NCBI GenBank assembly: GCA_050084985.1
Contig: JBITNC010000001.1
Coordinates: forward strand, 73,966,001 to 74,030,000
From: Nageia nagi
Taxonomy: Eukaryota > Plantae > Pinophyta
Length of the DNA stretch: 64,000 bases
Reading direction: 5' to 3'
The notes under the pieces were generated by a model that worked only from the letters and a program-made list of their open reading frames with translations, was not told the DNA's origin and ran no database searches. The position numbers and the translations under genes are program-made. Positions 3,763 to 32,551 of the stretch are shown here, in pieces (within the stretch, counting starts at the first letter, position 1; every line of letters begins with the position of its first letter).

Positions 3763-3809
3763 CTGATAAGCAACTTTGTCTTTAACAAAATCATCTATGA
3801 ACTTGTACC
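3763..3809 (-). other. Candidate 47-nt exon of an unidentified gene (host or TE-borne)
   Basis: Minus strand ttattttgtag|GGTACAAG...GCTTATCAG|gtaaaa, with an open frame YKFIDDFVKDKVAYQ. Protein not recognised. Confidence 0.35.
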
Positions 3810-4720: not shown

Positions 4721-4899
4721 ATATTTCATTTAGCCCCATTGCATGCAATTGGATGGTTTAAACAATAAGATAAATAAGGGATACACATTATTGGAGAAGA
4801 TTTAAAAGGATAGTATTGGAAAGGATTGATAGAAATAACCTAGCCTTGTGCACTATCAAAATTATGGAAATTAGGAAATATACCTTTATCCATGATTAT

Positions 4900-8611: not shown

Positions 8612-8874
8612 TAATTTTTAAACTGTAGTTTAAGAGTTTACTTTGGATCTCACACTTAATTTCTTTTAGTGCTCAAAGAAATAAATGCACACAAAAAAAT
8701 ACACAAAATGATGCACTATAATATTTTACCCAAGTTCACTTGATATGGGTTACATCCTATAATTGTGATACATTATAATAGGTAGCATGTTATAATATCA
8801 TTTGCATGATCTCCATTCTTCATCCTTTTAGCTTGTTGAAGCTAATTCACAACAACATTGTAGGTCTTTACTAA
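8612..8874 (-). repeat. Left part of the first LTR of the tandem non-autonomous LTR element, split by the Gypsy insertion
   Basis: Collinear with 49382-49640 and 52450-52710. The unit sequence resumes at 47514 after the Gypsy. Confidence 0.85.
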
Positions 8875-11800
8875 TTTCATGACCCTCAAAAGTACTCTTC
8901 TTATTCTTCCTACTAATCTTGAATTACTTGATTTGAAAAGCTTAAGCACCTATTTATTTTCATGAAGTGACAATTTGATGTTTTATCTCCATAGTTGTGA
9001 AGGTTTATGAAATCCCTATGTTGGACTAAAAATCCTATAGTGTATTTAGGTGTTAAAGTTATTAAATTATTATTTTAAATGATAAATGCCTTATAATACT
9101 ATGAGCTATATTTTTACTAGATATTATATATGTCTTGGCACTAACATAAGGGAGGTAAGTTTAATTAAAGCCACACTAATGGTTGATATGAGTTGGATGA
9201 AAATAATTTAAAAGGGATATAAATCTTATAGACAACTTAAAGAGTTTGTTAGACCTATCATATTTGAATTATCTAGCCTAACCTTTGTAATATAAGGTAT
9301 GGAACTTTTAGCTAAGAGTTTAATTAATAAGGAAGGAGGGGAATTTTTGAATGTAGAGAGTGTACATCTCTTTTACCACACATGGGTATTTGATTGATTG
9401 TTCTTCACTAACTTGGAAAACCCTAGAAGATTTAGTTTTTTCAATCATTCCTTGTATTGGGAATGCAATGATGGGGAAATGTGGTTTGCATCTTATCCTC
9501 TTTCCATAATAAGAGTTTTTTGAGGATGGTATAATGTTATTTAACATGTACATTTACCGTTATTTCTATGAGAGGGCCTTACATTGCAATGATATTTTTA
9601 TTTATCCTCTACAAATTTGTAGGGTTTAAAATAGAAGCCATGAGGCTTTCTCTAATATGGGAGACTTTTCTGGAGTCATGGGTAGTTATATATTGGTGGC
9701 TATTCACATGGGTGGGGAAGATAAACCCCTATATGAAGGAGCCTCTATAATTTCTATTGAGGAGATATTAGAAGCTAGATCTTGGTGTTTTGGAGAGGTG
9801 TTCATGTTCATATGGGTTCTTGAACAACATGACCTTATTATGTTTATGTGGAGGTTTGATTGGTTTCATCTCTACTTACTTGTAAGTGGGGTTTCACCTT
9901 TTGTTAGGGTTACAAAGTAGCCATAGCTTCTTTTTATATTCACATATCCTTTAGTAATGCATTATGATATGGGATTAATAGCTCAAAATCATAATAAAGA
10001 ATAAGGATTTTGGGCACATTCTTTTTTTCATTCAAAGCAAAAAATAAAATATTAATATTCATTTATTACATAATATTTCATTTTGGAAGAAAGCGTTAAA
10101 TTTAATAATAAAGATTTCATTATTATGCTACATCTTACATACATTCATATGAGATTCCTAACCGGTAGAATAATGTAAATCCAACAAGGAAATTGTGTGA
10201 CCTTGCTAACTCAATAAAGTGTTAAGAACACTATAAGAGATAGCAAACTTGACTGGTAATTTAAGTTAACTTATCCTTAGAATAGAGAGTCTTAACTTAG
10301 CCAAACTTGTAACTTGACCCAACTTGTAGGTTCGTATTGTAGTATATATTGTATTACTTACTTTATTTCATAAATGGAAGCTTTCATTCCATAGAGTATT
10401 TACTTCATTTAGCATAAATGGAATCTTGCATTATGTAGAGTGTTTCCTTAATTTATTATTATTGTTGTTATGTCACTTGTATAACTAACATGGGTGTAAA
10501 CACACTTACTAAGAATGCATTTCCCATGCCTCATATGTCTTTTTGAGAATAGGAACTAAACCCATGAACTAGGGTTGAAGAAGTAAACTATGGATTCTAT
10601 TGGCATCTTTTAACATAAATCTCATTTTTACATATAGGAGTCTATATTGTGGAGTGTTTCTAGATTATTTAAATTTTGGTTTGATTATAATGTAATTAAA
10701 AGATAGATGTTGTTTAGCATTAGCTTTCTGAGGTCCCTTGAGTGTTTAGTTAATTTATTATTATTATTGTTATGTCACTTGTATAACTAACATGGGTGTA
10801 AACACCCTTACTGAGAATGCATTTCTCATCCCTCATCTATGTTTTTGAGAATAGGAAATAAACCCTTGAACTAGGGTTGAAGAAGTAAACTATGGATTCT
10901 ATGGGCATCTTTTAACATAAATCTCATTTTTACATATAGGAGTCTATATTGTGGAGTGTTTCTAGATTGTTTAAATTTTGGTTTGATTATAATGTAATTA
11001 AAAGATAGATGTTGTTTAGCATTAGCTTTCTCATGTCCCTTAAGGCTGAATTTTGAAATGAAAGAATTAGACCATATGGATATAACATTTATGTAATGTT
11101 AATCTAGTTTATTAGACTTAGAAATATATACCTTAATTATGTTTAGTTTTTCACTTGATAACATACTAAAATGCATGTATGAATTATGTTTCAAAATGTT
11201 TCTTTGAGTAGTTACTTCCTATTAATCTCCTCTAAAATGAATTAAATAGTGAAACTATCATTGTATATGGATTTTAACTTGTAAATGCTAGTATAAACAT
11301 GTTATTTAGATGAGAGACCTTATCCAAAAATCATTTGTAATGATACACTAATTAGGAATAAAATGAATGATACCAATAAATTTGAGTTAGTGTTATGTAA
11401 AGTGAAATAAACTTGAAATGAGCTTTAATGTTTCTTTAAATAGGTAGGTTATTAATTGGAAAAAGAGGAGTTTAAAATCAATCTCCTTAGCTTAAACTCT
11501 AAATACATTCATCTATGCCATTTGTACAAATGTTTAACCATTGGAAAATCTTGAATAATGTGCTTACTACTTTATATTTAAATAAATGATCTATGAGAGA
11601 AGAGTGTTCCTAAAGTAAAATTATGTCAAACTATTATACTTAGATAAATGGGTTAGCACATGTCTAAATCCTTAAGCAAAAGTTTGAATGCATTTAGTAA
11701 AAATCTGAAATGTTTACAACCAATCCATATCATTACATCTTAGAATCTCAAAGTACAAAATTAGACAACCTTTACATACATTACAATTGTAGAATAAAAA

Positions 11801-12201: not shown

Positions 12202-14185
12202 ATGGTTGAGAATCATACAAGAAAAGATGGGTTTAGGGTTCATGGTAGAGGAAGGGACAAAGGTAGGGGTAGAATAAATATTCCTCAACATAATGTCTCA
12301 AATTTTTATATTATTGAGTCTATTAATAGCCTAAGATTAAATCAACTTGATCAAGTCATACAACAAGGGAATGTTGATAATGATAAGGTTGATATTCATG
12401 TAGTAGTGTAAAAAATGAGAAAGCAACTTCATGAAAATCAATAATTGATTACCCAACTCTAAAACATCCAACCTAGGATGGAAATCAAGGGATGTTCTTC
12501 ATGATCCTTTATTACAATTGAGAGCTCTAGTTACTACTAAAATCACTAAGAACATGAGACACTTACGTACCTCTAAGATTAGTGGAAAAATTGTAGAGGA
12601 TGCTGAAGGATGGATAACAAAGTTAGAGTCTCATTTTTTGATAAAAGGATATGGTCTAAATACTAGGACCACTATGGTAGCTTTATGACTAACATAATCT
12701 ACATCTGAATGGTGGCATATCTTTTTGGTGAACCCAAATAGATAAATTACTAATGTAAATTAGAATGAGTTTGTCAAACTCTTCAAGAAGAGGTACTTAA
12801 CAAACTAGTATTACATAGAAAGGTAAAATTAATTTTTCAAGTTAGAATAGAAAACCTCTTGGTTGAAGCATACTATCAATAATTCATCAAACATTTGAAA
12901 TACATGACAACTTTTGAAAGGGATGAAAATTGAAGATAGATTTACTTTCATGCTTGAAACTAGAATTGAAATTGTTGTTAACCTTCATGAGCCTAATTCA
13001 GTTCAAAAATCCTTTAATCTTGTAAAAAGGGAGGAGCTAAATTTGGATTCAAGGAAGATAGCATCTAACTAATTTAGAGCTAATAATGTTGAATAGAATA
13101 GGAATGAAAATAAAAAGTGTCCCAAATAACTTTGTTAGTTTGAAAATTGAAAGAAAAATCCACCTATTGATGAAACAAAATAGGATAGAATGGTGCAAAA
13201 CTCATCTAATCATCAAAATAGAACTAGGAAGAACATTAGCATTATGAAGATTATAATAGAGATCCAAAAAGAAATAGGTCTAATGTAAATGGACCAAACT
13301 TTGAGTCAAACTCTAGGAACCAAAATAAATCTACCTTGCCAAAAGTAGGGTGTTACCACCGTGGAGGGAGGCATTTCCTTGGTCAATATCCCAAAAAGGA
13401 AGATTACAAAGGAGATAAACCAACTCCCAAGGAGAACCACCACATTTATGCTGATACCAATAAGTAGGACATGGGAAATCAAGTTTTAAGCATCATTCTT
13501 GAAGGTAATATTTATAACCATCATATCTCTATGTTAATTTACCATGGTTCTTTTGAAAGCTTTGTTTCTTTATATTTACTAGAGAGGTTATCTATTAAAC
13601 CTAAAAAATTTGCTAAGCCTTGGAATATAAAGTTTGCCTCTATTCAAATATGCAAGGTTAAATATTATTTATCTATTTTAAAAGTATCTTTACTAGGTTC
13701 TGAATCAAAATTACCTTTACATGTAATACCCCTACTTTCTTATGAAGTCATCTTGGGGATAGATTGGTTAACTCAATCTAATGTTAAAGTTAATTTTTTT
13801 GATAAAATAGTAAAAGTTTTAGATGAAAAAGGGAACAAATAAATTTTATCCAATATTAATAAAAACTTCAGCATTCACCCTCTTTTAGTCCTATAGTTTA
13901 TGATAGTAGTGAAGAAGAAATGTCAAAGTTTTGTTGTGCATATGCAACCTTCTAAACAAATTAAAAATCCATATTTTTTTTCAAAAGTTTCTTGTATTAA
14001 AAAATTTTAAGGATGTATTTTCAAAAGAATTATCATGTATTTTATTAGTAAGAAAATTTGATTTATCAATAGACTTGATCCCTAGAGCAGGACCTATCTC
14101 AAGAGCCCCTTATTGTCTGACTACTTTAGAGATGCAAGAATTAAAATTATAGTTACAAGAATTGTTAGAAAAAGGTTTGATACAA
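12202..14185 (+). pseudogene. Gypsy gag, aspartic protease and start of RT
   Basis: Zinc-knuckle remnant at about 13351-13390; protease LIYHGSFESF...YEVILGIDWL (13471-13842); FKDVF...DLSIDLIPRAGPISRAPY...LLEKGLIQ, cut at 14185. Confidence 0.9.
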
Positions 14186-14514
14186 CATTATGCATAGCGA
14201 GAAATATTTACCAATCAACTAACATAAGGTTTTTTAATATTTAAATATTTCAAAAATACAAACCTAGGATATTTCACCATTTAGCCCAAATTTTACAAAA
14301 CAAAAAAAAACAATGGGTTGGCTTGCCAATATTTTATAATTTTTTTATAATGATAAGTGCAAATAGTTGCCTATACCTCCCATATTTTTGCAAGCAATCA
14401 CCTTGAAAATTAAAAAAATTACTTTTTATCAATGAAATCACTAATTATACACCTTATATATATTTTATGAGATTCAATTAGATATACCAACATTTCAACT
14501 TTTCAAGTTCTCTA

Positions 14515-14953
14515 AGATGCTCATTTGTGAGTAATTATAGATGCTTGTTTGTGAGGTATTTTAGATGCTCAAAAATTAAGAAATCTAGATGCTCATATAT
14601 TAGTGATTACAAATTCTCATTTCTATGATATTGCAAATGCTCATCTTTGCATGATTACAAATGCTTATCTATGCAATATTGAAGATGCTCATCTATGAGG
14701 GATTGCAGACACTTATCTATGCAAGATTGCACACTCTCATGGGATTGTAAATAGTCATCCTTGTGAGATTATAAATGCTCATTCATGTGGGATTGTAGAT
14801 GCTCATCTATGTAAGATTCTAGATGCTTATCTATGCAGCATTACAGATGCTCATCTATACAATATTATAGACACTCATTTGTATGGTATTATAGATGCAC
14901 ATTTATGCGATATTACAAATGCTCATCTGTGAGGAATTGTAGATTCTCATTTG
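14515..14953. repeat. 24-bp-period array 1, about 19 units, quasi-palindromic core AGATGCTCATCT
   Basis: Cores start at 14515, 14539, 14563, 14587 and so on; further degenerate units occur to about 15150. Confidence 0.9.
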
Positions 14954-15370
14954 TTAAATAAATTATATTCTCATTAGTTAGAGTATTTCAAATTTAATAT
15001 GACCATCACCTAAGGAATAAGGATTGCAAATGCTTGTCATTATTTCATATTAGAAATTTAGAAGCTAATTTTTTTATTATAGATGCCCATTTCCAAGGGA
15101 TTAAAAACACCCATTTTTAAGGGATTAGAGATGATAATCTTTGAGGAATAATACCCATTGAAAAATTTAATGGAAAGAAGTATGATAATATTCCTATAAA
15201 AAAGAAAATTGGAAAATATTTCATACATAGGAAGGCATCGACATCCTAGGATAAGATAATTATATGTTCTTTTGTACAATCCTTTATTATTTTGGTTTTA
15301 TATATCAGTAGTTAAATTTTGGTTGATTCATCATATGATTACATATATATTTGTATGCAAAAACATAGTT

Positions 15371-15497
15371 GATCCCAATTTGCCACTACATGAGGATATT
15401 CTAGAAAATACTTTTGATCCTAATATGCCACTACTTGAAGATATTTTAGAAAACATTGTTCATCCTTATATGCCACCACTTGAAGATATTTTTGTTG
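15371..15497 (+). repeat. 45-bp coding tandem repeat, about 3 copies (DPNMP[LP]LEDILENIV)
   Basis: Visible in ORF 15272-15583, upstream of the transposase zinc finger. Confidence 0.75.
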
Positions 15498-15689
15498 ATG
15501 ATATACCTAGTAATGATAATATTGTGAACCATAACAAGATAGAACATACACATAAGGTGTCTATTGCAACTCCTAATACTTAAATAGAAGCTCATAATAT
15601 TGAATATAATAAAGAAAGAAAAAATCACCAAAAAATGAAATCTATAAGAAGTGCTTCTTAGAAATCTAACAAAAATTAAATTCATTGGA

Positions 15690-17800
15690 CTATTGTTAGG
15701 TCATTTAAGGAAGAATGGTCATCATAATTTCCATTTATTTTCCTATTGATTCCTAAGAATGGTGATCCACCAACATAATGTAAATATGATATGTGTTAAT
15801 AGAAATTAGAAAGGGAATAACATATGCAACTTAAATATGAAACAATTGAAAATATTATGGAAAGGCATATGTGAAAATAATAGACCCATATGGAATAGTT
15901 AGAAAAGTTCAACTCATAAAGGATAAGAATAAATATTTCTATAAGAAATAAAAAATTAAATATAACAAGATCATGGATGAAAAACAAATTTGTAAATAAA
16001 TAGGTGCCATAATTACAACATAATACAGAAAAACAAAAGGCAAAACTTTAGTTTTGAAAAGTTTACAATTTGCTATCATTTTTTATCTTCTATAATAAGG
16101 TAGGTCAATAACATATTTTTATGATCATAAAACACATTTTGATTTAGCAAGTGTGCAAGACTTTCCAAGTTCTCATTGGTGTGATCGAAGTGGTTGGAAA
16201 ATGGCAAAATATCTTGCATTAGTTGAAAGAGAAGTTTTCAAAGAAAGTGTTAAAAATTCAAGATTTATTTCTTTATCAATTGATGAGCTAACTATAGTAT
16301 ATAGTACATATTGGGTATGTATACATATTTATATATTCATATAACATGTTAGATAACCCCATTTGCTAATAATACATAGAAATAAAAAATCTTATAACTA
16401 AGAAAACCTCTTCAATCTTGTTGTAAATAGTTTGAAAGAGATTTTTAATATGAATGATGAAGAAATTGTAAGAAAGATAATATGTGTAGGTGTGAAGATG
16501 GTACTTTAGTAATGCAAGGAAATAAAAATGGATTTTGTGTTTGATTTCAAATATTAGTTTCTTTGTATATGATACCTATTCATTGTATGGCTCATAGATT
16601 GAACCTTGTGTACAAAATAGTAACAACACATACTTTTGTGGCCAAAGTGGAGGAATTGATAGATGAGATATATGCATACTTTTCAGAAAGCTCCTCAAAA
16701 AATTTCAAATTACAACAATTTGCACTCAAAAAATTTGATAAAAAGAAAATGTTGAAACATGTGGACACTAGATGGATTTCAAATTTTAAACCTCCAAAAA
16801 GAGTATTTGAACAATATAAATTTTTGATAGGTATTTTCTATCAAAATAGAAGAGTTGTTGATAGAGCCAAGGATTTATTATATCACATGAAAGAATTAGA
16901 AATACTATTAATATTATGTGTAATGATACAAATATTATATGAAATGAATAAATTGATCAAGATTGCTCAAGTAATATATATATATATATATAATTGATTT
17001 TGTAAGTGAAAGGAAATGAGTATGTTGGACTGTTGATAGGTTGTATGAAACCAAATTTATATAGTTATTATTTGAGAATTGGAATTCATTGATAAACATG
17101 AAAAATCCAAAAACAAATCTAAGATTAAATATTTTTTATAGACTTTGTATCACTATCAATGGAAATGATATTCCTCTCTATTTTTTTGAAAGATAAGATA
17201 CAGTGTCATCCATTGAAATTGAATTTGAGTAAGTTTCTATGATGCCTATCTTATTTGAAAGAATTTTGTAAGAATCAAGGATTAAGTTGAGAAGCATTAT
17301 AGATACATTCATAAGAGAAATTAGAAAAATATTTAATTCAATACAAGATAATTTTTTAATAAACATATGGAGAATATTATAACTCAATTTGGAAGAACTA
17401 TAGAAATCAATGTTATAGAGATAAAATGAATTCTAGATAAAAAGAATTTGATTCAATAGTTTGGAATTTTTAGCTTGATAATGGTTAGTTAGTTTATATA
17501 ATTAGTGAATCCATTAGAGCCTAGTTCTATAACATGATTGTTGAAAAAATTGTATCTTAGTAGTATTCTACTAGATTGAATGTTAGACTACTTTAAATTA
17601 TATTAACTATGTTAGATAATGATTTTGAATTCTATATATGATAAAAGGGTTTTAAATGCTTTGCAATATGTTAAATAAAAAACATGAAAAATATTAGAGA
17701 AAAATCTTGAAAGTTATTTGAGAATTTATGTCTCACATCATATAATGAAGTTCCTTATGATAGAGGAAAAATGTTATGACAATTATTGAGTAAGAGAAGG
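15690..17800 (+). pseudogene. hAT transposase (ZNF862-like)
   Basis: RSFKEEW.. TTF-type zinc-finger start at about 15697; RFISLSIDELT (first D); DG..VMQG (second D); HCMAHRLNL (CxxH); VDTRW; decayed hAT dimerisation motif at about 17620-17730. Confidence 0.88.
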
Positions 17801-18213
17801 GTAGTAAATCAAATAGAGGAAAATAATGATGATGATACCTTCATAGACCACATTGTGAATATTTCAAAAGATTTACATGCATGCACCAATGGAACTGGTT
17901 CTCTAATGAACATGTGCTAGGTACTGTAGTTATAATTTTATAAATATTTTTACTATGACCTATAGTGTAATTTCATAGGAGTTTCTTATATTATTCAATG
18001 CTTAAAATTTTGGATTATCTAATGTTTGAAAGGAATTGAATGTAATTTTTTTTAAAATATTATATAAACATTGTATTTGATATTTGTTAAGTTTGGGGAA
18101 ATTGATGAATGTTATTTTGTGATAAATATATAGATCTTGATTCTTATTAATAATTCAATACTTTTTAAAATTCTATAATTTATAAGATTTTGAATTTAGC
18201 TTATCAACAAATT

Positions 18214-18432
18214 AATGATCATCTAGGTCAAGACAATGATGGTCATCTTTGTTAAGACATTGATGATCATCGAATTTTATATGCTAAAAATCATATAAGT
18301 TTATAAGTTGATGGTTGTTAAGGATTATAAATTGATGATCATTTTCATTTATACAATGATTATCATCTACATTTATACACACTTTCATGTACCAATCAGT
18401 AGATATCCCTTTTAGGTTGATGATCATCTATG
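18214..18432. repeat. 24-bp-period array 2, core GATGATCATC
   Basis: Cores at 18214, 18238, 18262 and so on; about 7-8 degenerate units. Confidence 0.8.
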
Positions 18433-21400
18433 TTTGTACAATACTTGCACATGCTATCATTAGAAGAAATTACTTGCCCAAACATTCAATGATTAGAAAA
18501 ATATGCCTCTATATAAATAAATAACCATTCTAATAGTTTTATCAAACATGTAATGATTCTAAAAATATATACTTGCTTACAACATTATATAATTAAATCA
18601 CCATTCAAATAGTTCAAAACATTGAACATAGTTGCTAATGCTATCATTCAAAATACATACTTATGCAAACATTAAATGATTCAAAACATACTTATGTAGA
18701 CCTAAAAGTATGTAATTAATGAATAAATACATAAATAAATAAATTTTCTATGAATATAATGATTATACAATGATATGCTCTATATCAGATATGCAATGAA
18801 TGCATAAGAAATATATAAACTTGATATAGAGTGGGCAAGTATTCAATTTGCTTAAAATACTCAAAATAAGGATAAGAATTAATATTTATAGGATTTAAAT
18901 TGCACTTCAAATGAACTCATAATGAATATTCATTATAATGGAACCATGAGTCATTCCCCAAAATATGGACCTCCCAATCTAAAAGATGCATGTTGTTGGC
19001 TACATGGGAATGATATGTCATTGGCTATGTGGAACTTAATGTTTCATGTTGTACATAAATAAGAAATAATAGATCGTAGAGAACATAACCAATTTCTTAA
19101 GATAGGTGGTGTTAAGAGACATCGTAAGTTTGATGTTTGGGATAACCACTTATCAAAGAGATCTGATAGGGATGTTAACCTTCACCTCCTATATTTATAA
19201 CCTGTAAGGAAATAGAGAGGAGTGAAATTTGACACATATAAATAATAATAATCTTTTATATATTCAATATAATTTAAAATATAAAACCATGGTTTATGAT
19301 ATTGCATTGGTCCTAGAACATGGTATTGCATTGTAATAACAATTTATCTTTATTTATGTATTACTACTAATTAATCATTTAATGAGTCTAAATATAATTA
19401 GTAAATAAATAATAAATCATTTTTAGGCATTAAAAATTTTCCCCTCTTTGGATATGTAATTAAAAGCATTAAAATTGCATAGTCCAAAGAAGTTTAGAGA
19501 AGGGAAGAAAATTATCAATAATAAATATGACTTTCCTATTTTGATCAATATGTTGAGTATGTTATGTTGATTGGCCCCTTTTGGTCTTAGTTTCCCATAG
19601 CTTATGTTGCATTTAGTAAGAAAGCCAAAAATAGGATTCCTTGTATGAGGTGAGCAGTCTATGTGAATCCTATTCACCTTGGAAATGCTTATAGAACAAA
19701 GTAACATATACCTACATAGATCACATCCATGAAAGAATAAGCAATGTAAATAGCAAGGATGGAATAAATATAATATGTAGTGTATCACTATGGTTGAAGT
19801 GAATCATAGTATTATAAATAATGATATATAGACTACTCTAATAGAAAAATCATAGTGTATGAAGAACAAGTGAATGAGGTACTCATTAATGCCCTAGGCT
19901 TGTATTATCTATAATGTATAGAATAATGTGATAGACAACTTATAGTCTATAGGTGCAAATATGATGATAAAATTTAATGAATCAACTTTATAATAATGAT
20001 AATTATCAAGTTGATGAGGAATTTTAATGACTCAAGCTTGGAATAATCCTGTAATTGATAGAAAATATTGCTCATAGAGTGATCATGGCTTTGAAAACAT
20101 TTATTAGTAGAATAATGATTGATAGCATTCAATGTTTGTAAGTGTATCAAATATTTAATATTCAATGGTATTACATTTCAATACTTCAATTTGTATAAAT
20201 TTTCAATGTGAATACATATAATTAGAAGCATGGTATGCCTAAACTTTTCCAATCATGTCTTCAACAAATGTGATCAAATTCAATAAACCATTGTAAATAT
20301 ATGAAATAATCATAACAATGAACATATATTCAATGAAATTTTAGTATGCCCCAATTACAAATAATTTATAGCAATTGTCTACCATTGGTAGTATTAGTTT
20401 TATCATATGAAGTGTAAAACTTCATAATATATTTAATTCATGATCATCCATATCATTTTGCATCATGTCAATTTTGAAACAACATTGCCATTTGTCATAA
20501 CATTTTGAAGATACCACATGAATTAGCAACATTTAATCATATCATAAATCTAATTGTACCATGTTCATAGAATTAAAATATACATCATTTTGAGCCCTAG
20601 AAACTATTAATTTCTAATATATATTTTAAAGCACACACAATTATATTATTTTCATGCCACTAGCAGCACATGAATGAATGATTTAATATTTAGGAAAAAG
20701 AGTTCATTCAATTGGAAATGAGACATGAATTTTTAGGTGTATATCATTGAAAAACCAAGTATATTTTTAGAAATGAAAATTTGGCAAACAATTTTAATTA
20801 AAGTGAATTTTAGAAATAAAACATTACCACTTGCAATAATCCAATATTGAAAATGGTCGACTAATAAAATCATGACAATGAAAATTAAAGTAGTGTATTT
20901 AAAAATTTTAGTAGTTTGACTCAATCCATGCCATTGGAGACATATATTTAATATAGATAAATTTAAATAATGCAAATGAATAATTAAAAATTGAATACTT
21001 TGAATTAGGCAAAGGCACTATTTTACCATTTGTGATTGACAATCATTAAATTGATGACCAATTTGAAAAAAAGGACACCACTGGTAGCATGGAATCAACA
21101 AAATTTGTTTTGAAAAAAGAAATCATAACCTTGTAAAATATTTTCAAGTCCATTAGATAGGAAAAATAATACTTTCAAGAAACATAGAGCCAAAAAGAGA
21201 GAGGCCTAGGGTTTAGTGTAAAAGAGAAAATATAAAAGGTGATTGTTGACTTTTTTCTCATTTCATTCTTTTCTTCTATCATTTTTAGTGTTATGCTAAA
21301 TCTGACCCCTTGATAGCTAGAAGCCTATTTACTTGGCAAATATTCATGACTCTATCCATCTTTATGACCATAATACATGCCCATAATGTTGAGGAGCATT

Positions 21401-21716
21401 CTTTTCTTTGGGACCCCTATTTTTGAATGCTAGTTGATATTTTGATCATCTTATTTAGCTGTTCACTTTTGTCCTCATGATCAATATTGATTGGAGGGGA
21501 TTGGACATCCTATTACTATATGTAGTGGCCATATAGTAGAGTACATCCATTGCATTCTATTTGATCATACTTTAATCCCTTTTCATTTCCATTTCACCTC
21601 CTAGTTTCATTCAAATTTGTATTCTATTCTCTTCTTGCACATTAGTCTATTTATTTCTAAATTAAAATGTTTAATGCATTAATTTTGGTTTTAATATATT
21701 AATTTTCCCCTTGTAG

Positions 21717-23500
21717 GAATGCAAGGTATTAATTAGGTGTTGGCCAATGTTTATGGTCATACTGCAACTAGGATGTGGCCCAAGATAAATCATTCAAATA
21801 ATATTCTTTCTCAATGTGGGTTAGTAGATTTGGCTATCACTAGGCATGCCCAATATGATCTACCATTATTAATATCTTTAGTAGAGTGCTAGGACCCAAA
21901 TAGCAACACATTTTACCTACCTCCAAGTGAAATGATAGCCACATTGCTAGATGTGTATCAGATATAAGGGGTTCCTATCTAAGGACATTGGTACATCAAA
22001 TGGAGGTGTTTGATAATAACACCTAGGAGTAGTTTGCCTTATAGTTGACTCAAGACACTGAATATGATTGGGAGCATCATGTGGAAAGGTTATTATAGGT
22101 ATTCCAATTTGAAAAATTTGATTAACACCTCATATTATTCATAGATTTGATTATCTCAACTTACCTAAATCCATATAAGAGTAGCTTAGCTTTTCCACTT
22201 ACACTAGTGTGGGTTGTGCAAGAGATGTGTATGAGAGATAGATAGTTTGAATGGGACCAATTAGTATTGGTGAAATTGTATAAAGATATTTACAATTTTA
22301 TCAATGTTGATAAGTTCAACATGATGGTGGCACACATGGATCTTCTCCACATTTGGGCTTGTGAGAATATTGTAATCATCATACCAATTATTTTGTAGAG
22401 GGATCAGGAAGACCCAAGAGATGTTATGATGACATGTTAGGTTTCAAGAACCCATGGGTCAAGGTATGCACACTCCTTGGAGGTGTGAAGGAGAGAGATA
22501 TATGTATTGCATGTGGAGGACTTGGTATGGATATCTTATGCTAATTTTGTATAGGATGATGATGCTCATTAGTTAGCATGGGTTCATCAAGACTATTTCC
22601 TCCATAATAGGAGGAAGGTGGTGGAGCCATACTATCCTCACAAAGTGTTGAGATAGTTTGGGATCTAGCAGGGGATCCTACTAGTTCCTATATGCTATCA
22701 TCAATACATGGTAGAGAGAGACACACCTATAGGATTGTAGGTTATCCTAGCTTAGAGTCTCACATGGGAAGATTCAAGAGTACATGATATAGAAGTTGAT
22801 GTTTCCATGGAACCAAGAGTGGTTCAAGGATAGGCCACATGGTTATAAGGAGTGCATCCAATCAGATTAAGCATGGATGAGTATTAAGAGGGAGAGAATG
22901 TGAAAGTCATTGAGGGGTCCTTTGAGGATGACCCCTACTAGGTTAACAATCTAATGCATGATATTGTTATGTAGGAGGGAGGAGTAGCACAAGGATTGGT
23001 TGCATTAGCTAATGCTATGGTACCAAGTAAAAAGACTAACTACATACATAATTTTACAATTTAATATATGATTATATGACTAACAATACATACATTATTT
23101 ATAGGAGAGATAAAGACATGGATGGTGTTCGTAAAGGTAGAGAATGAGAGGCTCAAGCCTCTTAAGGGATAGGTGGTAACCTTATAGGCCACACTTGAAT
23201 CTCAAGATTCACATATTGCTACACTAGAGAAATTTGTGAAGAGGTTGTAGGATAGTTTTGATTAGCCTCCACCTAATGAGCAATGGGATTTCATGGATTA
23301 GATTGAGTGGAAGGAGGGTGAGGTATCCATACTCTAAGGGACATATGAGAGGGTTAAGGTTATATTATCAAGTAAAAGTATCAACACTAATGTTGTGTCT
23401 TGAGGAGTGTCATTATCAAGAGCTAGCAGTAGTAGCTGCCAATTTAGGTAGAGGATGGAGGATACTTCCACTAGTGGTAGTAGTTCTCATCAATAGCCTA
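21717..23500 (+). pseudogene. Plant Mobile Domain (aminotransferase-like, PF10536; MAIN/MAIL-like) gene with C-terminal coiled coil
   Basis: YDLPLLISLVEC*DPNSNTFYLPPSEMIATLLDVYQI*GVPI; FEW..LVL.KLYKDI; LLHIWACENI; VEPYYPHKVLR*FGI*QGI, all matching PMD consensus blocks. Candidate intron 23027-23104. Confidence 0.88.
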
Positions 23501-24379
23501 GGCCATAGATTTTGGTTTAAACCCCATATAATTTTTGCTTCAAACTTGTGTAAAAATGTGTTTGGTATAGTTTATTTACTTTATAAATGAAATATGAATG
23601 GTTCAATTTTATTATTGCATAATGTGTTTGATAAAACATGTAATCTCACAAAGTACAAGTTTAAGCAATGAACCAAACACTAAAATATCATGTATACAAT
23701 GTTTAAGTCTTAATTAATCCAAACAATATACTTCAATATATATTAATGTAATATCTCATAATCAAGTACTTAAAATTATCAATCATTAATGGAAGAAATA
23801 AGCCAACCTTATAGCTAGGTTTTGAAATACCAAATGATAAACATGTTTGAGTTTTTCCTTGTTAACAATATTAAATTTATTTTTTCATTACTTAAATCAA
23901 TTAGAAATGTATTAAGCATCAATTATATACTATTTATTTAATTCTATTTCAAGAAATGCACATTGTTAATAGCTTAAAAATAGGTGAAACACTACTAGCA
24001 GCATGGATTTTAGGTTAGAGAATACAAATTTTAAAGAATAGTGAAAAATAGATTAACCATGGAATGAAAAAGTCAATAAACATATGCATACAATAAATAA
24101 TAATTCATAATGGTTGGACAAAGAAACAACCTAGCTAATGTACACTATAGTTATAATTTTTTATATTTAAAGTAATAGCTTTATGTACCTAGGGATTTTT
24201 TGCAACCCAAACACATTTTGTAGAGGTAGGAACAAAGAGAGGCACCTTTGTTTTTACTTGCATTGAAGTTCATTATTTGTCCATTATTCTTTAATTTTTC
24301 ATTGCTGCATCTATGTTTATTAGCAAAATAATAATTCAAACCATGTAAAGTACTTACCATACCAATACAACATCTAGGT

Positions 24380-25400
24380 TGTGAAGGAGGTAAGGGATTT
24401 GTAAACACCCTTAATTATCCATTATCAGGGTGCACAAGTGCATCATCCATATTAGTATGATCATCCATCTTGATTACTTTCTTGTTAATGAAATCCTAAA
24501 TATTATGCCTCAGATTCCTACAATTTCTTATTAGATGTCTAGGTACTTTGTGATAATTGCAAAATTCCACATATGAAAATTTTTTAGGCACACCATTAGG
24601 GAATTTAGGTTCAACAATAAGTGGAAGTTCAATAAGGTCCTCTTTCAACAACATGTTAAGAATATTGTCAACAGTATCAATCAACTTTATAAATTTCCTT
24701 TAAGGTTTATTATGTCTTTCAGGAGTATTCTTTTTATGTTCTTGAGTTGTATGATTATTATTATCAACATTATTTACTTCAAATTTCTTATTTATTTTAG
24801 GAGTATTTTCCTTCTTATCATATGTTTGAGGTTTGTTACTATGCATAGCATATAGTTTTTTAGTACAAGCCTCTTTTTTAAATAAAATATCCATCATTTC
24901 ACCCAATATCATATCACAATTAGAGATAACTAATAATTTATACATAGGAAATAATGCATTTGCAAATGTATCTTTCAAATCTTGCTTAGGTATTGTAATC
25001 TTGTTAGCAATTCGTTTCCTTTTTTCACAAAATTAACCAAACATTGGTTAGGCAATTTCTTAATTTTACACAAATATTTAAAATTATATTTTTCAAAAAA
25101 TATTGTATTTAAAGTTTTATGGAAATTTATGAATAAAATCCTCATACTCATCAATACTCTTTTTCAAGAAGAAGAAAGTATCATTTCAATGCATCATCTT
25201 TCAAACTCTATGAAAATAATTTAACAAGCAAATCTTTATCATGCATATATTCCATAGCTTCTTCTTGAAATTTTCTAACATGCATCTTAGGATCTTGCAA
25301 AATATAAAAATTTTTAAATTTAATATTCTTTTTCCCATTGAGAACTTTAGAGATAATTGAAGCAAAAGAAGAAATCATCAGTGTCATCATTAAGCAATTC
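24380..25400 (-). pseudogene. Tat/Ogre-type gag remnant
   Basis: QDPKMHVRKF...DLLVKLF (retrotransposon gag start); FCNYHKVPRHLIRNCRNLRHNI (Tat-type CxYH..GH...C knuckle); FTNPLP. Confidence 0.75.
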
Positions 25401-27499
25401 CTTTTTCAATTTCTTTATCCTTTCCTTAGTTGGTTTTGAAACTACAATAGATAGATATTGAAAAATAGGTATATCATATATTGGGTGTGGTGGAGGGGTT
25501 TAAGGTGGAATTGTTAAATTTCTAAGCTCATTCTCTTTAAGTATAATAAATGGTCCAATTCTATTAACTCTTTCATCTTCTAGTTTATTAAGTAATTTCA
25601 TCATAAACTATAATTGTTGTCTATAAGGATCCAGATGAAAGGGGATAGTTTCCTAAATATCATGAAGGATATTAATTTTGATATTATTATCCTCTAATGA
25701 CTAATCAAGTTTTTTCTTATAAGCATCATTAGCAAGATTTGCAACTTGTACTTGATGTTGAGCATCATGATCATCATCTTGTACAATATGCTTACCTTTA
25801 AGAAGCATACCTAATTTACAATGATCAAGATTGAGAATCAAGTAGTTATAATATTCATCTTCACTTCCCTCTCCATCATTTTTAATAGTTACTTAACCTA
25901 GGGGATTTGAAACATCTTCATTACCTTTAGGAGTAAGTTTTATCTTAGCTTCATTCATGCTAGTGGCGACATGTTCACAATATGACACACTGTTAGTGGC
26001 ATCAATATTGATAGTTGAAACCCTCCTTCATGTTGAATCTACATTTTCATATGAAAAATAACTATCCAATGATTATGAAGCTATAAAGGTATCAACTAAT
26101 AGCACATAATTTGTTAGAATATCAATAACAATTTCAACATTATGAGTAAGAAAATATTCCAACTTCTCTCTATCAGATAGCAATTCCTTAATAGATCAAA
26201 TATGGCTAGGAATTGTATCTAATTGTTCAATGTTAGCATTATCAAAAGAATTATCCTCATGACTATTCAAAGTTACAATTTTAAATTTTAATTGTTTAAT
26301 ATTTATATTAAATCTATGAGGAATTTCACTAATAATATTCATTTTCTTACTAGAGTTTGTATATTCAGAGTCATTACAAGTATCATAGTTACCAAGGTGA
26401 GGTTCTTGTATTGGTAGGTTAGGCTTATGCCTAACACTTCTTCAAATATCATTAAAATTGTAAGTTGCTTTATGTTTAAATCTATTTTTAAAAAATAGGT
26501 AGAAAAAACCCAAGTTTTATCATTTTCTCTAGCTCTATTTGAAGAGCTTTAGGTAGCGGGATGAATAATAATGAAGATGGATTCATGAATTTTTAGAATG
26601 AATGCCTTAGGTGAAGACCTAGGTGTGGAAGAATTTCAAGTTCAGTAAAATGTAGACCAAAAAAATGTAATTAATGAATAAATACATAAATAAATAAATA
26701 GTCTATGAATACAATGATTATACAATGATATGCTCTATATCAAATATGCAATAAATATACATAGAACATATAAACCTGATATAGAGTGGGCAAGTGGCCA
26801 ATTTGTGTACAATCTTCAAAAGAACAATAATGAAACTTCAAAGTATTATAATTAGAATTCAAATGAAATCTCAATGAATATTTGCTAGAATGAAACCACA
26901 AGTTGTTCCCTAAAATATTGACCTCTTGATCTAAAAGTTACACCTAGCTAGCTACATGGGAATAATATATTATTGGTTGCATGGAAATTGATGTTTTATG
27001 TTACATAAAAAGCAGAGATAATGGATCTTATAGAGTATAACAAATTTCTCAAGATAGGGGACATTAAGAGACACTATAAGTTTAATGTTTGGGACAACCA
27101 CCTATTAGAGAGATCTGATAGGGATGTCAACCTTCACCTACCTTATTTATAACCTACAAAGAAATATAAGGGAGGAAAATCCAACACATAGCAATAACAA
27201 TAATCTTTTCTATATTTAAGATAATTTAAAATATAAAACCATGGTATATGATATTGTATTGGTCCTAACACATGGTATTGCATTGTAATGACACTTTATC
27301 TTGATTTATGTATTATTTTTAATTAATCATTTAACGAGTCTAAATATGATTTATAAAATAAATAATAAATCTTTTTTAAGTATTACAATTTCTTTATACC
27401 CAAAACACACTTGCTCATGAGTCATAAGCATTCCTTTTCATTTCAATTGTTTAATGTCTTACAACATAAGTAATGATTCAAAAATAGAAAAAACTTTCT

Positions 27500-28839
27500 T
27501 ATAACTTCTACAATGGCATAAAATCATAAAATGTAAAACCAGCCTTTCTAAAATTAAAAATACCATCTACAATAGTATTTGAAAAGTTCTCCACTAAAAT
27601 TCAATATATCATAACCACAAATTTGGTTAAATAACCATAAATTCTTATGAAAAAAGTTCTAAGCTTCCCATTGAATGTCTAAAGCTTAAATTCTATCTTT
27701 TCAAGAATTTCTTCAACATTATCCTCAATCTCATCCTCATAAGTAGCATCTTTAGGAATGTTAGTTCATATATTAAACCCAACTCTACTACTATCAATAC
27801 TCCTCTTTATGCAGTATCCAATATTTTAACTAAGCTTCTCATCTTTTTCCCTCCATCCTCCTTGGTATCTCCATAGCTTGAGTCTCCTTTTCTTTTTGCT
27901 TCATTAGAATGTGGTATCACATATTATGCTCCTTTATGATTAATTTTAATTTATTATTATCTTTCAAAGGTTTTAGGAGCTTCTCCTTCACCATGGATGC
28001 ATTTAATAAGTTCTTTATTACTTTTCCAACTTGAACAACCATGTTGTTCACTTATTTTTTTAAGTTATTAAAGTTGGACTAAAAAATATAGCAAAAGAGC
28101 ATAATTAGACATGATAACATAAATTTGAAAAAAAATATTCAAATAAAACTACAACATACATTGTACATACACTAAATTACATTCAAAATTCTTACTTCCA
28201 CTACATCTTTTATAGCTTCAACAATTTCAACCTTCTACATGTCAATGGCCCAAGTGTCATAATAGTATTGGGCCTTGGCATTTAAATTTTTTAACTTGTT
28301 CAAAATGAGATTAACATCAACATATATATATATATAGAGAATCAAATTATATCCTTCTTGATGTCACCACTTTAAAATGTACCACAAGATTATCTGAAGA
28401 ATTTTCCTTTTTTGAAAATATCCTTTTACTCTCCTCATAGTTTGGAAATCTTGCATTAATCTCTTTGAACAATAATTTTGCATGAAATTCCCATATCTTT
28501 GCACTCAAAATATCATGAAGAACACAATTCCTAATTGTTGTATCCACATTTGAGAAAATTAGGCTCTCAACTATAATAGATGGATCTAAATCTTTTTCCT
28601 CTACTTCTATAGCTATAGTTCCAATCGGTATGTTGTGTTACTAGTTGTGGAGGCTTGTGGCTTGTAGAAACTTGATGTTGATTCTCTTCCCCTATGCCAT
28701 CACCATGCATGGGACCTTTCTCTTCTACCATTTCTTGTAGGTAATCCTCATCAAGTTTTGGTGTACAAAGAGCTATTATGTTACATGTCACTAGGGTTAT
28801 TCCTAAGGGTTGATCCCAAAAAAAACTTAGAGAAACCAA
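27500..28839 (-). pseudogene. hAT cargo gene A: unknown protein with a SAP-like motif
   Basis: ORF pieces 28567-28839 and 28347-28547; GT-AG intron 28195 to 28079; next exon, with a 1-nt homopolymer shift, reads SNFNNLKKISEQHGCSSWKSNKELIKCI, which has SAP spacing. Confidence 0.5.
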
Positions 28840-30104
28840 GTTGAATTAGTTTCAAAATTTAGCAAAAATGGTCCAAATTTGTATAGCAACCTTGGAGAAA
28901 TAATCATTGTTTAAAAATTTACATGTAGAGTAAAAGGAAAATTTGTATGAAATCTTAAAAAAGATTAGAAAATCAAGGCAAAATGAACTTATTGTTAGTT
29001 TCAAAATATAGCCTTCAAAATAAAAGGTATGAAAGGAAAAATGAATCTTCGTCATGTTAAATGTAATGTATAAAAGGTATGAATGCTATGATGTAAAAAT
29101 ATTTATGCATTCATATATATTAATAATATTTAATTTTATTTTTATCATTATTATGGTACTTAACATAATTAACTAAATATTTTATTAAATTTTCACTTAA
29201 TACAATATATAATGAGGAACTTATCTATTATAATTACAAAAATGTTCTTAATTTTTTTTTAATATTTTATATATGTAATTCATACGAAGGAAAAATTGGT
29301 GGTATTTATAATTTTTTTTAATAATTTGAAGGTGAATAGCTATGAAAGTAAAGGTCAAATATATAGGAAAATCATAATTAGAATTTAAAAATGAGATTAA
29401 ATTTGTGGTGATTTGATACATAAAATTAATACCCACAAATAATTTTAAGGTGAATGGATCCTCTTATTGGGTTCCAAATATTAGCCAATTTCAAAATCTT
29501 AAAATCCTAATTTTCACTTGCAAGAGTTGATTAGCCACTAGGAAAAACACTACATGTCACTAAATTTATATTTGATAATTTGAAATTGGGTATGTTGCTA
29601 ATTGCTAGAATGTTATATAGGCCAAGATCTTTCAATATGATTTTTCTTTTTCTTCTCCCTCTTCAACTCAATGTAGCCTTGCCACTAGCTAAAACATTCC
29701 ATAAAATATTTGGTGGAATATGTTTGCCTTTTGGTTGTACTTGTACCTAGCCTCTCATTGGTGGAATCAAGGGAGGAAGTACTTATCACAAAATGATGGG
29801 TTGCTATTAAGAAATTGAAATATTCAACAACCCTCCTTCAAAATTTTATATTTATATGTGATTAATTATTACATATTGCAATGCAAATAATAAGAAATAG
29901 AAAATAGTTTAAAAGTATTCATGTAAAAATACTTTTCTTATCTTTTGGCTCCAAGACTTATGTGGAAGGGAGTTGTTCCTATGTTACTTGAACTGGTGGT
30001 GGTGGACCCATATTTGTATCTATAATCAATCAATTATTCCAAAAAATATCTAAAAACTAGAAAGGTTAAATCAAAATGAATAAATGACTATGTTTTTTGA
30101 CAAA

Positions 30105-30290
30105 TAGGCAATCATCTATGCAATGACACTCACATTTTTTTTGTGAGATTGCATAAATGATCATCAGTAAGATTGCACTAATGATCATCTATTTCATTAC
30201 ATAGAGTATCATCAATGTAATTGCATAGATAATCATATATGTCACTATATAGGCAATCATGTATATGTACATTGAGTTTGACCATCTATC
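30105..30290. repeat. 24-bp-period array 3, core (G/A)ATGATCATC
   Basis: Cores at 30156, 30180, 30204, 30228, 30252. Confidence 0.75.
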
Positions 30291-30299
30291 CAAAAACTT

Positions 30300-31619
30300 C
30301 TCTAAGGTATTTTATGTTATTCAAAGAAAGAATGATTACTTGAGGAAGACGTATTGTATTATGGTGATTGTTCAACTTCATTATCATCATCATAAATATT
30401 GATTTGATTATTTTATTTATTTAAAGGATATAGGCTATTAATGTGGTATGACAAAAAAGAATTTTTTGTATAATTGAAGATGACTTATGCATTTTTCCTA
30501 AGGTGAACCGAATTTCCCCTTGGGAATCTCCCATATCTTTAGGCTATTTTCCTCTAATTGCATATTGTCTACAAAAGGTTGAATTTGTTGCTTTTCTTTA
30601 CATTAAAGATAAATAAAAATTTTAATGAAACAAAAATCATTTTAGTTAGATTCTTCAATTCAATAATACAATTAACATATAAATTAAAATAAAGAAAAAT
30701 ATATTCAATTACCTACACTTCCTCTTCAATAAGTGCCAATGATTTCAACTAACTATGAGAAATTATTAGAGGTGGAGTATTTTGCAAGCTATAAAAAGCA
30801 TCATAGTATAATGCAAGCAAATAATTACAACTAGACAAGTATACATTTTGAGAGCTTGATATATTTTATAATGGAAATATCAACTCTAATCCTATTTAAA
30901 ATGTAGGAGCTCTAATCAAATTTTTTATACTCAATACATCAAAAAATGTAATAAATACCCCAAAATGAAATATCCAAAGCTCTACCTAGTAGAACTAGCC
31001 TAAAAGAATTATATGAAAACCTTCATTAAAGGGTTCTGAACATCTTGCATACAAAGGCCTCTTCTTAAGGGATTGTGGCCAACTATACAAAATCATACTA
31101 CATCATGAATTATGCTAGGAAACTAAGGAAAATTATAAAATAGATATTAAAAATTAAGAGTACGTGTTAAAATCATAATAAATTAAAATGAGACTTGATA
31201 AACTAAAACCCTTTCACCTATCAAACATTTCACCTAGATACCATAGTTTGTTTCCATATGTATTTTATTTTTATCATTTAAAAGAGTCACCTTTGTATTG
31301 ATAGGCTCCTCAACATTCTTTAATAATAGACATGTCAACCTATGTACATTAGAGGGTCTAACAAAGAATAAATAAGATTTACCATGTACCATCATTGTTA
31401 CAATTGAATTTAATTATTAAACATGTTAACAATCATATCCAAAAGAGGAATATCATTTGAAAACATGCCCATTGAAACCAATAGCATAAGGCTAGATTCT
31501 TGCAACCAACTTAAGTCATATCTAGCAATGGTCTAAATCTCTAAAATTTGAGAGAAAATAATATTCTTGTAACTATACAATGCTAGTTGAGCTAAGGTGG
31601 CAACATTGGATGTTGACAT
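30300..31619 (-). pseudogene. hAT cargo gene B: decayed multi-exon gene with a PMD-like N-terminus
   Basis: TATAAAT at about 31663-31657; ATG at 31619; MSTSNV...WLQESSLMLLVSMGMFSNDIPLLDMIVNMF; donor-like gtaaatc at about 31382 and gtaattg at about 30712. Confidence 0.45.
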
Positions 31620-31876
31620 AGTGGTCCTATGTAGTGAGGAATTGAGGAAAGGGAGGATTTATAATGTAGGAGGGCAAGGAAAAATTTGAAAAGTTGCATG
31701 GGGAAAGGAGGGACAAGGGGGTATAGAGGGAACTAGAAATCTAGAGATTTAGAGCATTGAAATGAGGTGAAAATGACCCATAGAAGGCATTTTATAATAC
31801 TTGATAAGTGTTAATATTTATTATGTACAATTACATTTAGTTCCTTTTTTCAATGAGTCATTTTATTTGGAACACA

Positions 31877-32345
31877 GATGATCGATAATGCAAATATGTT
31901 GATGATCATTTGCATAAAAGTGCAAATGATCATCTGTATAAAAGTGTAGATGGTTGTTTACACTTTTATACATATGATCATCTGCACTTTTATATGAACT
32001 ATCATCTATACTTTTATATAGATCATCATTTGTAAAAAAGTACAGATGATCATTTATATAAAAGTGTAGATGATAGTTTACACTTTTATACAAATGATCA
32101 TCTATACTTTTCTACAAATGATTATTTTCACTCTTATGTAAATGATTATTAGTGCCAACATGCTAATAATCATTTGCATAAAAGTTTATATGATCATCTC
32201 TAGCAATGTGCAAATGATCATCTACCCTTTTATTTAGATAATTATCTGCACTAATGTGTTGATGATCATCTACATTTGTGTGCAATTAATCATATTTATG
32301 AAATATTAAACAATCATCACCATAGATGAGATATGAATCATCTAT
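31877..32345. repeat. 24-bp-period array 4: 16-bp palindrome GCAGATGATCATCTGC plus 8-bp spacer in both orientations
   Basis: Exact 24-bp phase from 31877 to 32261 (17 units); spacers ATAAAAGT or ACTTTTAT. Confidence 0.92.
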
Positions 32346-32551
32346 CTTTAAGAATCAATTGTCATTATTTCATAAAACTAAAAAATAATATATATTGCAA
32401 AAAATTTACAACTTTTTTAAAAAATAATTGATTTTGCCACTTACCCTTCATGATTTTCAAAAACTTTTCACTATAACTTTGAATAATGTTCACCAAATTT
32501 TGAAAAAAACATTTCTCCATTGTTCATTATCATAATTCTAGTTTTATCTAA

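Follow-up and report, generated by a model that had tools for sequence, protein, structure and literature searches.

The window analysed here comprises 64,000 nucleotides of the Nageia nagi genome (contig JBITNC010000001.1) and is crowded with plant retroelements. The reverse transcriptase (RT) of a Ty3/gypsy element is split in it by an insert that covers positions 14186-32543, or extends to 32551 if the putative duplication at its right end is included. This AT-rich region (GC ~25-33%) carries a transposase, two further genes denominated A and B, and four tandem arrays of a short motif; it probably represents a single dead and ancient three-gene DNA transposon of the hAT type. Its components follow each other in the order terminal inverted repeat (TIR), array 1, transposase (+), array 2, gene A (-), array 3, gene B (-), array 4, TIR (Table 1). 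This succession of arrays and genes had already been proposed from the letters of the window alone (in the following the original prediction), and after removal of a nested long terminal repeat (LTR) retroelement it is found collinear in related copies.

The left flank of the insert is Ty3/gypsy pol and reads ..LIPRAGPISRAPY..ELQELLEKGLIQ. The RT frame halts at 14185 (..GLIQ) and the same frame is picked up again at 32552 (PSVS.. VLFVNKKDG .. YHKLNIKDHDTFKIAFQTRYGHFEF), from where it matches the Pfam family RVT_1 with an E value of 1e-9; an uninterrupted host frame needs ...ATACAA followed directly by CCAAGT.... Because the frame breaks at the first position and resumes at the second, the insert sits inside the RT of the retroelement, as had been predicted. 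After subtraction of two later insertions the element measures 8,896 bp (18.4 kb with both). The original prediction had put the members of its multi-gene family at about 10 kb.

Table 1. Features of the transposon insert and its borders in the window (LTR, long terminal repeat; TIR, terminal inverted repeat; RT, reverse transcriptase; L and P numbers denote related loci and proteins)
Feature	Position	Strand	Remarks
Left putative 8-bp target-site duplication, TGATACAA	14178..14185	.	final host RT bases; host frame stops here
Left TIR, CA(from CG)TTATGCATAG	14186..14197	+	L001 and L002 alignable from exactly here; inverse of L007 right end ..CTTATGCATAACG
Array 1, ~19 units, C-type core AGATGCTCATCT, single orientation	14515..14970	+	remnants up to 15156
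Three 45-bp tandem repeats, a 15-aa repeat in the transposase N-terminal region	15360..15494	+	same repeat peptide in L007 30-344
hAT-type transposase gene (motif-level assignment)	15380..18000 (ends approximate)	+	many stops and frameshifts; homologues P0001/P0002
Array 2, ~7-9 units, A-type core GATGATCATC	18209..18430	.	between convergent 3' ends of transposase and gene A
Nested LTR retroelement, not part of the hAT	18695..27387	.	LTRs 18694-19438 / 26650-27391, 81% identical
Gene A, largely helical or coiled-coil	27777..29870 (start not defined)	-	tblastn with L007 exons
Gene A exon 3 remains	28087-27777	-	tblastn with L007 exons
Gene A exon 2 remains	28550-28184	-	tblastn with L007 exons
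Gene A exon 1 remains	29662-29543 + 28800-28633	-	split by 758-bp insertion
758-bp insertion in gene A exon 1, not part of the hAT	~28795..29550	.	missing from L007
Array 3, ~5 units, A-type core	30150..30265	.	between gene A 5' side and gene B 3' end
Gene B, DUF1985/PMD-like on weak evidence	30915..31619	-	homologues P0007-P0021
Gene B exon 2 remains	31092-30915	-	two-exon gene
Gene B exon 1	31619-31237	-	ATG at 31619, MSTSN..; in-frame stop 31535-31533; frameshift near 31413
Array 4, ~17 units, A-type palindromic core	31880..32290	.	~270 bp upstream of gene B ATG
Right TIR, TTAT-CATAATT, decayed from TTATGCATAACG	32527..32537	-	alignment with L007 7773-7784
Right putative 8-bp target-site duplication, TTATCTAA	32544..32551	.	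host RT frame restarts at 32552

Relatives of the element were collected with a transposase piece of 150 amino acids (16545-16994), which led to two proteins (P0001 and P0002, 70-73% identical), and the alignment of these was scanned against public metagenome contigs. Nine loci were obtained, six from the same family as the window element (DNA identity 66-86%) and three (L005, L006 and L008) from a sister family. By blastn L001 and L002 are collinear with the window from the left end through gene A, and L003 is collinear across the site of the LTR insertion. In L007 the collinearity extends from the transposase over gene A (window 27770-28792) and array 3 to gene B (30511-31847), and from there over array 4 to the right TIR. 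A flank of L007 (9571-9813) encodes a PPR-like peptide (..NTVSWTAMIASYTKYENG..), which shows the metagenome contigs, as far as this peptide can be read, to be plant nuclear DNA. L002 (Ga0139313_100472, 1-6931) was considered as an element with a left end at both of its ends and was rejected as such: the flanks beyond the terminus are identical and inverted, which marks a fold-back contig. Its last 1.8 kb are the reverse complement of its first 1.8 kb, with the flank of the transposon end included, and the fold-back is probably an assembly or amplification chimera.

The transposase of the sister family is ~45% identical to that of the window family. Its gene A homologue (L006 13242-12859, minus strand; 30% identity, E 1e-15) is located just downstream of the transposase, and the succession TIR, array, gene B, array, upstream region of gene A corresponds to the window order read from the other end. 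All three array places seen in this family share a period of 29 bp and the motif CCAT..GATAGCA, and its TIR is CAGGGATC/TAGGGATC. An apparent inversion of a gene B cassette in L006 was ruled out, as this locus contains two copies tail to tail and the second has its own terminus (TAGGGATCATTTTA at 15477, matching CAGGGATCATTTTA at 7921). Copy 1 ends at 13936, and ~1.5 kb of other sequence precede the terminus of copy 2. The 115-bp stretches upstream of gene A (13822-13936 and 18446-18560) are 97% identical between both copies, so these must be much younger than the window copy. The multi-gene hAT family of the original prediction thus gains support, since its layout recurs in the related copies as well as in the sister family.

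Both ends of the element could be located with these relatives. The left boundary lies at 14186-14188, exactly where the alignments of L001 and L002 to the window start. The terminal letters here are (C/T)(G/A)TTATGCATAG for both the window and L001, and CGCTATGCATGG for L002. At the right side L007 has CTTATGCATAACG, the counterpart of the decayed window repeat with 32537 as its last base. The termini rest on these three independent left ends and two right ends, which define a TIR of ~11-12 bp, CGTTATGCATA; as CGTTATGCATA(G/A) it opens the window element, L001 and L002 on the left, and its inverse closes L007 and the window element on the right. The insert that had been predicted to reach 32551 is real, and this coordinate includes the right duplication beyond the TIR. 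A second TTATGCATAG at 60431 was inspected as a further element end; it falls in a Copia RT and is a chance match.

The arrays were found by Tandem Repeats Finder together with a repeat finder, and the motif GATGMTCATCT was scanned with at most one mismatch over the 64-kb window. This gave 40 matches versus 3.45 expected and 9 in the top shuffle, and 38 of the 40 are located inside the four arrays. All four have a period of 24 bp and the core AGATG(A/C)TCATCT, precisely as predicted; they are real, mutually related and, within the window, limited to the insert. The position in parentheses separates two types, a difference that the original prediction had overlooked. In array 1 the center is always C (ATGCTCAT, with eight exact copies in one orientation and none inverted), and in arrays 2-4 it is A, which makes ATGATCAT a perfect palindrome. 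In array 4 also the 12-bp spacer is present in both orientations so that the whole array is self-complementary. Arrays 1, 3 and 4 precede the transposase, gene A and gene B, respectively, by ~250-500 bp (for array 1 the distance to the transposase start is ~230-400 bp), and array 4 is found 250-660 bp from the right end of the element. The statement that each gene is bracketed by arrays is literally true.

Related copies have the same arrangement. Array 1 with its C-type core is found in L001 (7970-8210) and L002 (599-935), array 2 has ~13 units in L003 (10360-10670), two in L001 and ~3 in L007 (2975-3040), and arrays 3 and 4 have their counterparts in L007 at 5643-5786, with intact AGACGATCGTCT, and at 7413-7630. 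The split in C-type and A-type is common to L001, L002, L003 and L007. This means that position and core type of the arrays are conserved across copies and the copy number is fluid.

In L001 and L007 undecayed sites can still be read, namely AGACGCTCGTCT in array 1, asymmetric and in one orientation, and the perfectly palindromic AGACGATCGTCT, the site of arrays 2-4, in arrays 3 and 4. CpG survives in 8 of the 18 half-sites of L001 and in 8 of the 22 of L007, as compared with none of 44 in the window. The origin of AGATG(A/C)TCATCT by CpG decay of AGACG(A/C)TCGTCT, which had been suggested as plausible, is confirmed because these less decayed relatives retain the older form. For the window element as a whole (14186-32537, composite) the observed/expected ratio of CpG is 0.06 versus 0.49-0.54 in L007 and L001, and this near-total loss fits a very long methylated residence in the genome. 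Extreme GC poverty combined with CpG loss would also fit Welwitschia (PMC8275611).

The transposase of the window copy shows a Zn-finger-like N-terminus, SIDE.., DG.., IHCMAHRLNLV with the CxxH motif, TRWIS and a C-terminal ..RV..ALQYVK.K. In L007 and L006 it is less decayed, and a Cys/His-rich N-terminus is followed by SIDE.., DGASVMQG, IHCMAHRLNL and TRWIS; the series SIDE(L/V)T, DGASVMQG, IHCMAHRLNL(V/A) and TRWIS can be read in the window, P0001, P0002, L007 and L006 alike. The C-terminal stretch LW.KLYPS...ERVF(N/S)AL.(Y/F)(I/V)KSK.(R/Q)N(R/K)L...L...(I/L)R(I/L)YV matches, by eye, the conserved core of the hAT dimerisation domain (PF05699), and the CxxH motif is described as a hallmark of hAT transposases (PMC3285750). 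At motif level the element thus appears to belong to the hAT superfamily, judged from the motifs read by eye (SIDE, DGAS, CxxH, TRWIS, ERVF..L..IKSK.RNRL), the short TIRs and a target-site duplication (TSD) compatible with 8 bp. A Pfam search for PF05699 in the C-terminal pieces L007 2336-2590 and L006 11000-11431 returned nothing, and sequence searches of the PDB, including one with a transposase profile, yielded no relative. The AlphaFold2 (AF2) model of the transposase core (L007 938-1411, from an alignment of seven rows) reached a predicted local distance difference test (pLDDT) score of 35 and is unusable. Tandem peptide repeats like those near the N-terminus (Table 1) are carried by the variable regions of VANC proteins as well (PMC5735166).

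All protein searches were run exon by exon or piece by piece, with unjoined exons. Gene A is best read in L007, where three exon-like open reading frames (5344-5006, 4976-4506 and 4522-4202) encode an acidic linker and then long helical or coiled-coil stretches. Three close relatives (P0003-P0005) are present in the protein database. The pieces of gene A match no Pfam family; exon 2 resembles a phage-integrase SAM-like domain over 25 residues, below threshold (E 0.042; 14.5 bits, where the cut-off is 22.6), and an Atlas search with the window exon 2 gave nothing usable. The relatives of gene B comprise 13 short plant proteins among 1.84 billion representatives, and a hypothetical protein of Taxus chinensis is included in the homologues; matches to long repeat proteins look spurious. 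In the Atlas search with its homologue P0013, 17 of the 30 nearest named clusters were DUF1985 (score 0.93, 181-185 shared features), and the nearest cluster by predicted structure was PMD (TM 0.60/0.72). These predictions point weakly to a DUF1985/PMD-like protein. Gene B has no match in Pfam even at an E value of 10 and DUF287 was not seen; within the window its profile finds no other match, with the nested LTR retroelement included.

Co-occurrence of genes A and B with the transposase, which the original prediction had named as a check, is found in every copy that reaches far enough: three related copies (L001, L002 and L007) have gene A collinear with it, as the window does, and L007 shares this collinearity for gene B too. 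On present evidence both genes are best regarded as parts of the element rather than independent elements, because they are collinear in all these copies, have no termini or TSDs of their own around them and keep their order in the sister family. In rough comparisons with L007 by the NG86 method gene A has a ratio of nonsynonymous to synonymous divergence (dN/dS) of 0.16-0.34, gene B one of 0.31-0.49 and the transposase one of 0.18-0.51 (with 1.04 in one comparison over 46 codons), and the selection of high-scoring segment pairs pulls all three down alike. Since the values of A and B resemble those of the transposase, both were, by this measure, functional and selected genes of the lineage rather than captured debris. 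Host-gene relatives are absent among the 1.84 billion representatives; 17 relatives were obtained, and the genuine ones are short and resemble those of transposable elements (TEs). The terms cargo and cassette used in the original prediction hence do not describe conserved, selected and element-specific genes (dN/dS 0.16-0.49) of this kind.

Between L007 and the window genes A and B are 66-71% identical and the transposase 77-82%, a drop of ~10 points that L002 does not have. In L007 and L001 taken together A and B lie 6-10 points below the transposase in identity to the window. Synonymous divergence from L007 amounts to ~0.8-1.3 for gene A (window, L001, L002) versus 0.16-0.6 for the transposase, and to 0.58-0.74 for gene B (window). 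Weaker constraint could be the simplest cause of the lower identity in L007, and saturation noise or an exchange of modules between lineages are other candidates.

Two later insertions interrupt the window copy. The nested LTR retroelement must have arrived after the transposon was in place, since L001, L002 and L003 continue directly from window position 18693 to 27392 and cross the site without interruption. The second insertion, 758 bp long and AT-rich, had been overlooked; it is bordered by a 12-bp direct duplication TACATGTCACTA (28783-94 / 29553-64), the length of which suggests a small non-autonomous Mutator-like element as its origin, and clear TIRs were not seen on it at 28795-29550. 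Array 2 is separated from the 3' end of gene A by an AT-rich degenerate repeat (AATGATTCAAAA..) at 18440-18694 and 27392-27570, and it was within this repeat that the LTR element landed; the equivalent in L007 (3326-3889) has units of 43 bp. L003 contains a 7.9-kb insertion of its own (2257-10186), located towards the 3' side of the transposase region where the window has 18068-18072. The alignments on its two flanks overlap by 5 bp, which suggests an LTR retroelement with a TSD of this length.

The closest parallel to this organization is found outside the hAT superfamily, in the Mutator-like VANDAL21 and VANDAL6 (Hiun) transposons of Arabidopsis. These are three-gene DNA transposons as well, with VANA (transposase), VANB and the anti-silencing protein VANC, which carries DUF1985 and DUF287. 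A protein of the DUF1985 kind may be present also in the window family, where gene B is nearest to DUF1985/PMD clusters. Both systems have a short motif repeated in tandem in non-coding regions near the genes, which is family-specific and differs between related families, and in both the array copy number varies between copies (PMC5735166). Unlike VANDAL elements, which are Mutator transposons with a TSD of 9 bp and a non-palindromic 9-bp motif, the window family is of the hAT type with short TIRs and a putative TSD of ~8 bp, and it has a 12-bp CpG palindrome in strict 24-bp spacing. Its host is gymnosperm-like and gene A has no recognised VANDAL counterpart; binding and demethylation are properties of VANC and would be predictions for the window family.

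With the classical hATs (Ac, Tam3, hobo, Hermes, Tol2) the element shares the CxxH after the second D, RW, the C-terminal ERxF(S/N).L..IK..R.RL, short TIRs, a putative target duplication that would be compatible with 8 bp and subterminal repeats, which in these systems are required beyond the TIRs (PMC3285750, PMC10368747). It differs in two conserved genes added to the transposase, in regular arrays that are internal as well as subterminal, and in its TIR, as CGTTATGCATA departs from the common YARNG start, although the sister family has CAGGGATC/TAGGGATC. The hAT elements are otherwise textbook single-gene DNA transposons. An accessory protein beside the transposase is likewise found in MuDR (mudrA/mudrB), En/Spm (TNPA/TNPD) and PIF/Harbinger (ORF1 and transposase), but these belong to other superfamilies, their accessory proteins are unrelated and their arrays are restricted to the ends. 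In En/Spm it is the accessory protein TNPA that binds the subterminal repeat arrays. A full-text literature search of incomplete coverage returned no hAT with a DUF1985/PMD-type or other conserved accessory gene, and a survey of active plant TIR elements published in 2025 treats accessory proteins and PMD under Mutator-like elements only (PMC12973397). As its letters can be read, the window element is a hAT transposon with a VANDAL-like design logic, and the recurrence of the layout in related copies argues that this design is real.

We propose that the element would move by the cut-and-paste mechanism of hATs and that its arrays would be high-density binding platforms for one or more element-encoded, sequence-specific and probably dimeric proteins. 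In this general form, drawn from analogy with known systems, the reading of the arrays as putative binding platforms seems rather probable. The two subterminal arrays may serve the transposase, like the subterminal repeats of other hATs. Alternatively or additionally, the DUF1985/PMD-like protein encoded by gene B may bind all four; it would thereby protect the three promoters of the element from methylation and keep them active, in the manner of VANC in VANDAL Mutator elements. Once the element was silenced, methylated CpGs of the sites would have decayed to TG/CA, which would leave AGATG(A/C)TCATCT. Methylation is lost under VANC, and both the motif and the protein differ from family to family (PMC5735166); this precedent fits all four arrays, the CpG in their site, the way in which motif and family vary together, and a gene B of the DUF1985/PMD-like kind. 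The BED domains or N-terminal zinc finger of Hermes bind subterminal repeats, cooperatively on a palindromic pair (PMC10368747), and this second precedent fits arrays 1 and 4 as well as the left/right asymmetry of C-type and A-type. That gene B, perhaps together with gene A, binds the AGACGATCGTCT arrays as a dimer and acts as a VANC-like anti-silencing system in a gymnosperm hAT lineage is put forward tentatively, as something possible that we regard as rather doubtful. Motif, period and protein would then co-evolve between the sister families (24 bp AGACGATCGTCT versus 29 bp CCAT..GATAGCA), a corollary to be taken with the same reserve.

Alternatively, the arrays could be binding sites of the transposase and of nothing else, with arrays 1 and 4 as the working ones and arrays 2 and 3 as duplicates inside the element or ends in reserve; the arrays would then be unrelated to genes A and B. 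This is unlikely but has to be considered seriously, as hAT transposases contact their subterminal repeats through an N-terminal zinc finger, with cooperativity on palindromic pairs (PMC10368747), and the Cys/His-rich N-terminus found here would be its equivalent. Arrays 1 and 4 are indeed subterminal, at 250-780 bp from the ends, and the two ends could be told apart, as in Hermes, by the asymmetric C-type on the left and the palindromic A-type on the right. Arrays 2 and 3, on the other hand, lie 3-4 kb inside and have no adjacent TIR, yet they are kept in diverged copies, and the internal array between genes B and A is kept even in the sister family. The location of three of the four arrays in front of a gene speaks for a role in regulation, and known hAT subterminal repeats are short and irregularly spaced, unlike the strict 24-bp arrays.

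A further alternative takes genes A and B for captured host fragments (transduplication of the Pack type) or for remains of other elements, and the arrays for functionless, selfish expansions comparable to microsatellites. Capture of host fragments is frequent in plant DNA transposons, all copies seen are pseudogenised and neither gene has a Pfam domain; nevertheless we consider this explanation highly improbable. The A and B proteins are conserved between two families that have no DNA alignment outside the transposase (30-39% identity, E 1e-11 to 1e-15, dN/dS 0.29-0.49), only short TE-like relatives and no plant host gene were found for them in the database, and the multi-stretch matches to long proteins look spurious, one being a PKD-domain repeat protein. 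Separate termini or TSDs are absent, as described above, and the arrays not only keep position and core type across copies but in the sister family have changed their motif at all places together.

Exchange of cassettes at the arrays, which would then act as lox/FRT- or integron-like sites for gain, loss, inversion and swapping of genes, had been suggested in the original prediction and is very improbable, although arrays flank each gene, the spacers of array 4 run in both orientations, the drop of ~10 points in L007 but not in L002 could hint at exchange between lineages and the integrase-like match in gene A exon 2 exists: no copy gains, loses or swaps a gene at an array and array copy number is the only variation, gene order and orientation are invariant in all covering copies and in the sister family despite ~45% transposase identity, the seeming inversions are a fold-back contig (L002) and two tail-to-tail copies with their own termini (L006), no recombinase was found beyond that sub-threshold match of 25 residues, and lower identity of A and B is expected from weaker constraint plus introns.

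Several points weigh against the preferred reading, that is, a three-gene hAT-type transposon with arrays as binding platforms. The assignment to hAT depends on motifs read by eye, with the third catalytic residue unlocated, and Pfam gave no meaningful family in ~45 stop-free pieces taken from the three genes. A TIR and an 8-bp TSD had been anticipated; the former is defined, and the two putative duplications (Table 1) have the geometry of an 8-bp TSD by position and agree in five of eight bases. Six bp between the right TIR and the right duplication (32538-32543) have no explanation. Array 2 is located at convergent 3' ends rather than at a promoter. The DUF1985/PMD link of gene B comes from a single source of embedding and predicted structure, its profile searches reached no named family, its AF2 model has a pLDDT of 55 and Foldseek returned nothing from the PDB. 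Furthermore, all copies seen are decayed, and the related ones come from metagenome contigs.

If the preferred reading holds, the design of transposase, accessory protein and motif arrays would be extended from Mutator (VANDAL) and CACTA to hAT transposons and to a non-angiosperm lineage. If the arrays are the targets of a DUF1985/PMD-like protein, the evolution of sequence-specific escape of transposons from DNA methylation could be tested on an independent example, with a 12-bp palindromic site and its protein as a candidate pair that is directly testable. In that case counter-defence of the VANC type would be recurrent across superfamilies of DNA transposons and much older than the Brassicaceae. 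For annotation it means that pipelines which expect hATs with one open reading frame would split such elements wrongly and would call genes A and B hypothetical proteins of the host, as has already happened with the entry from Taxus chinensis.

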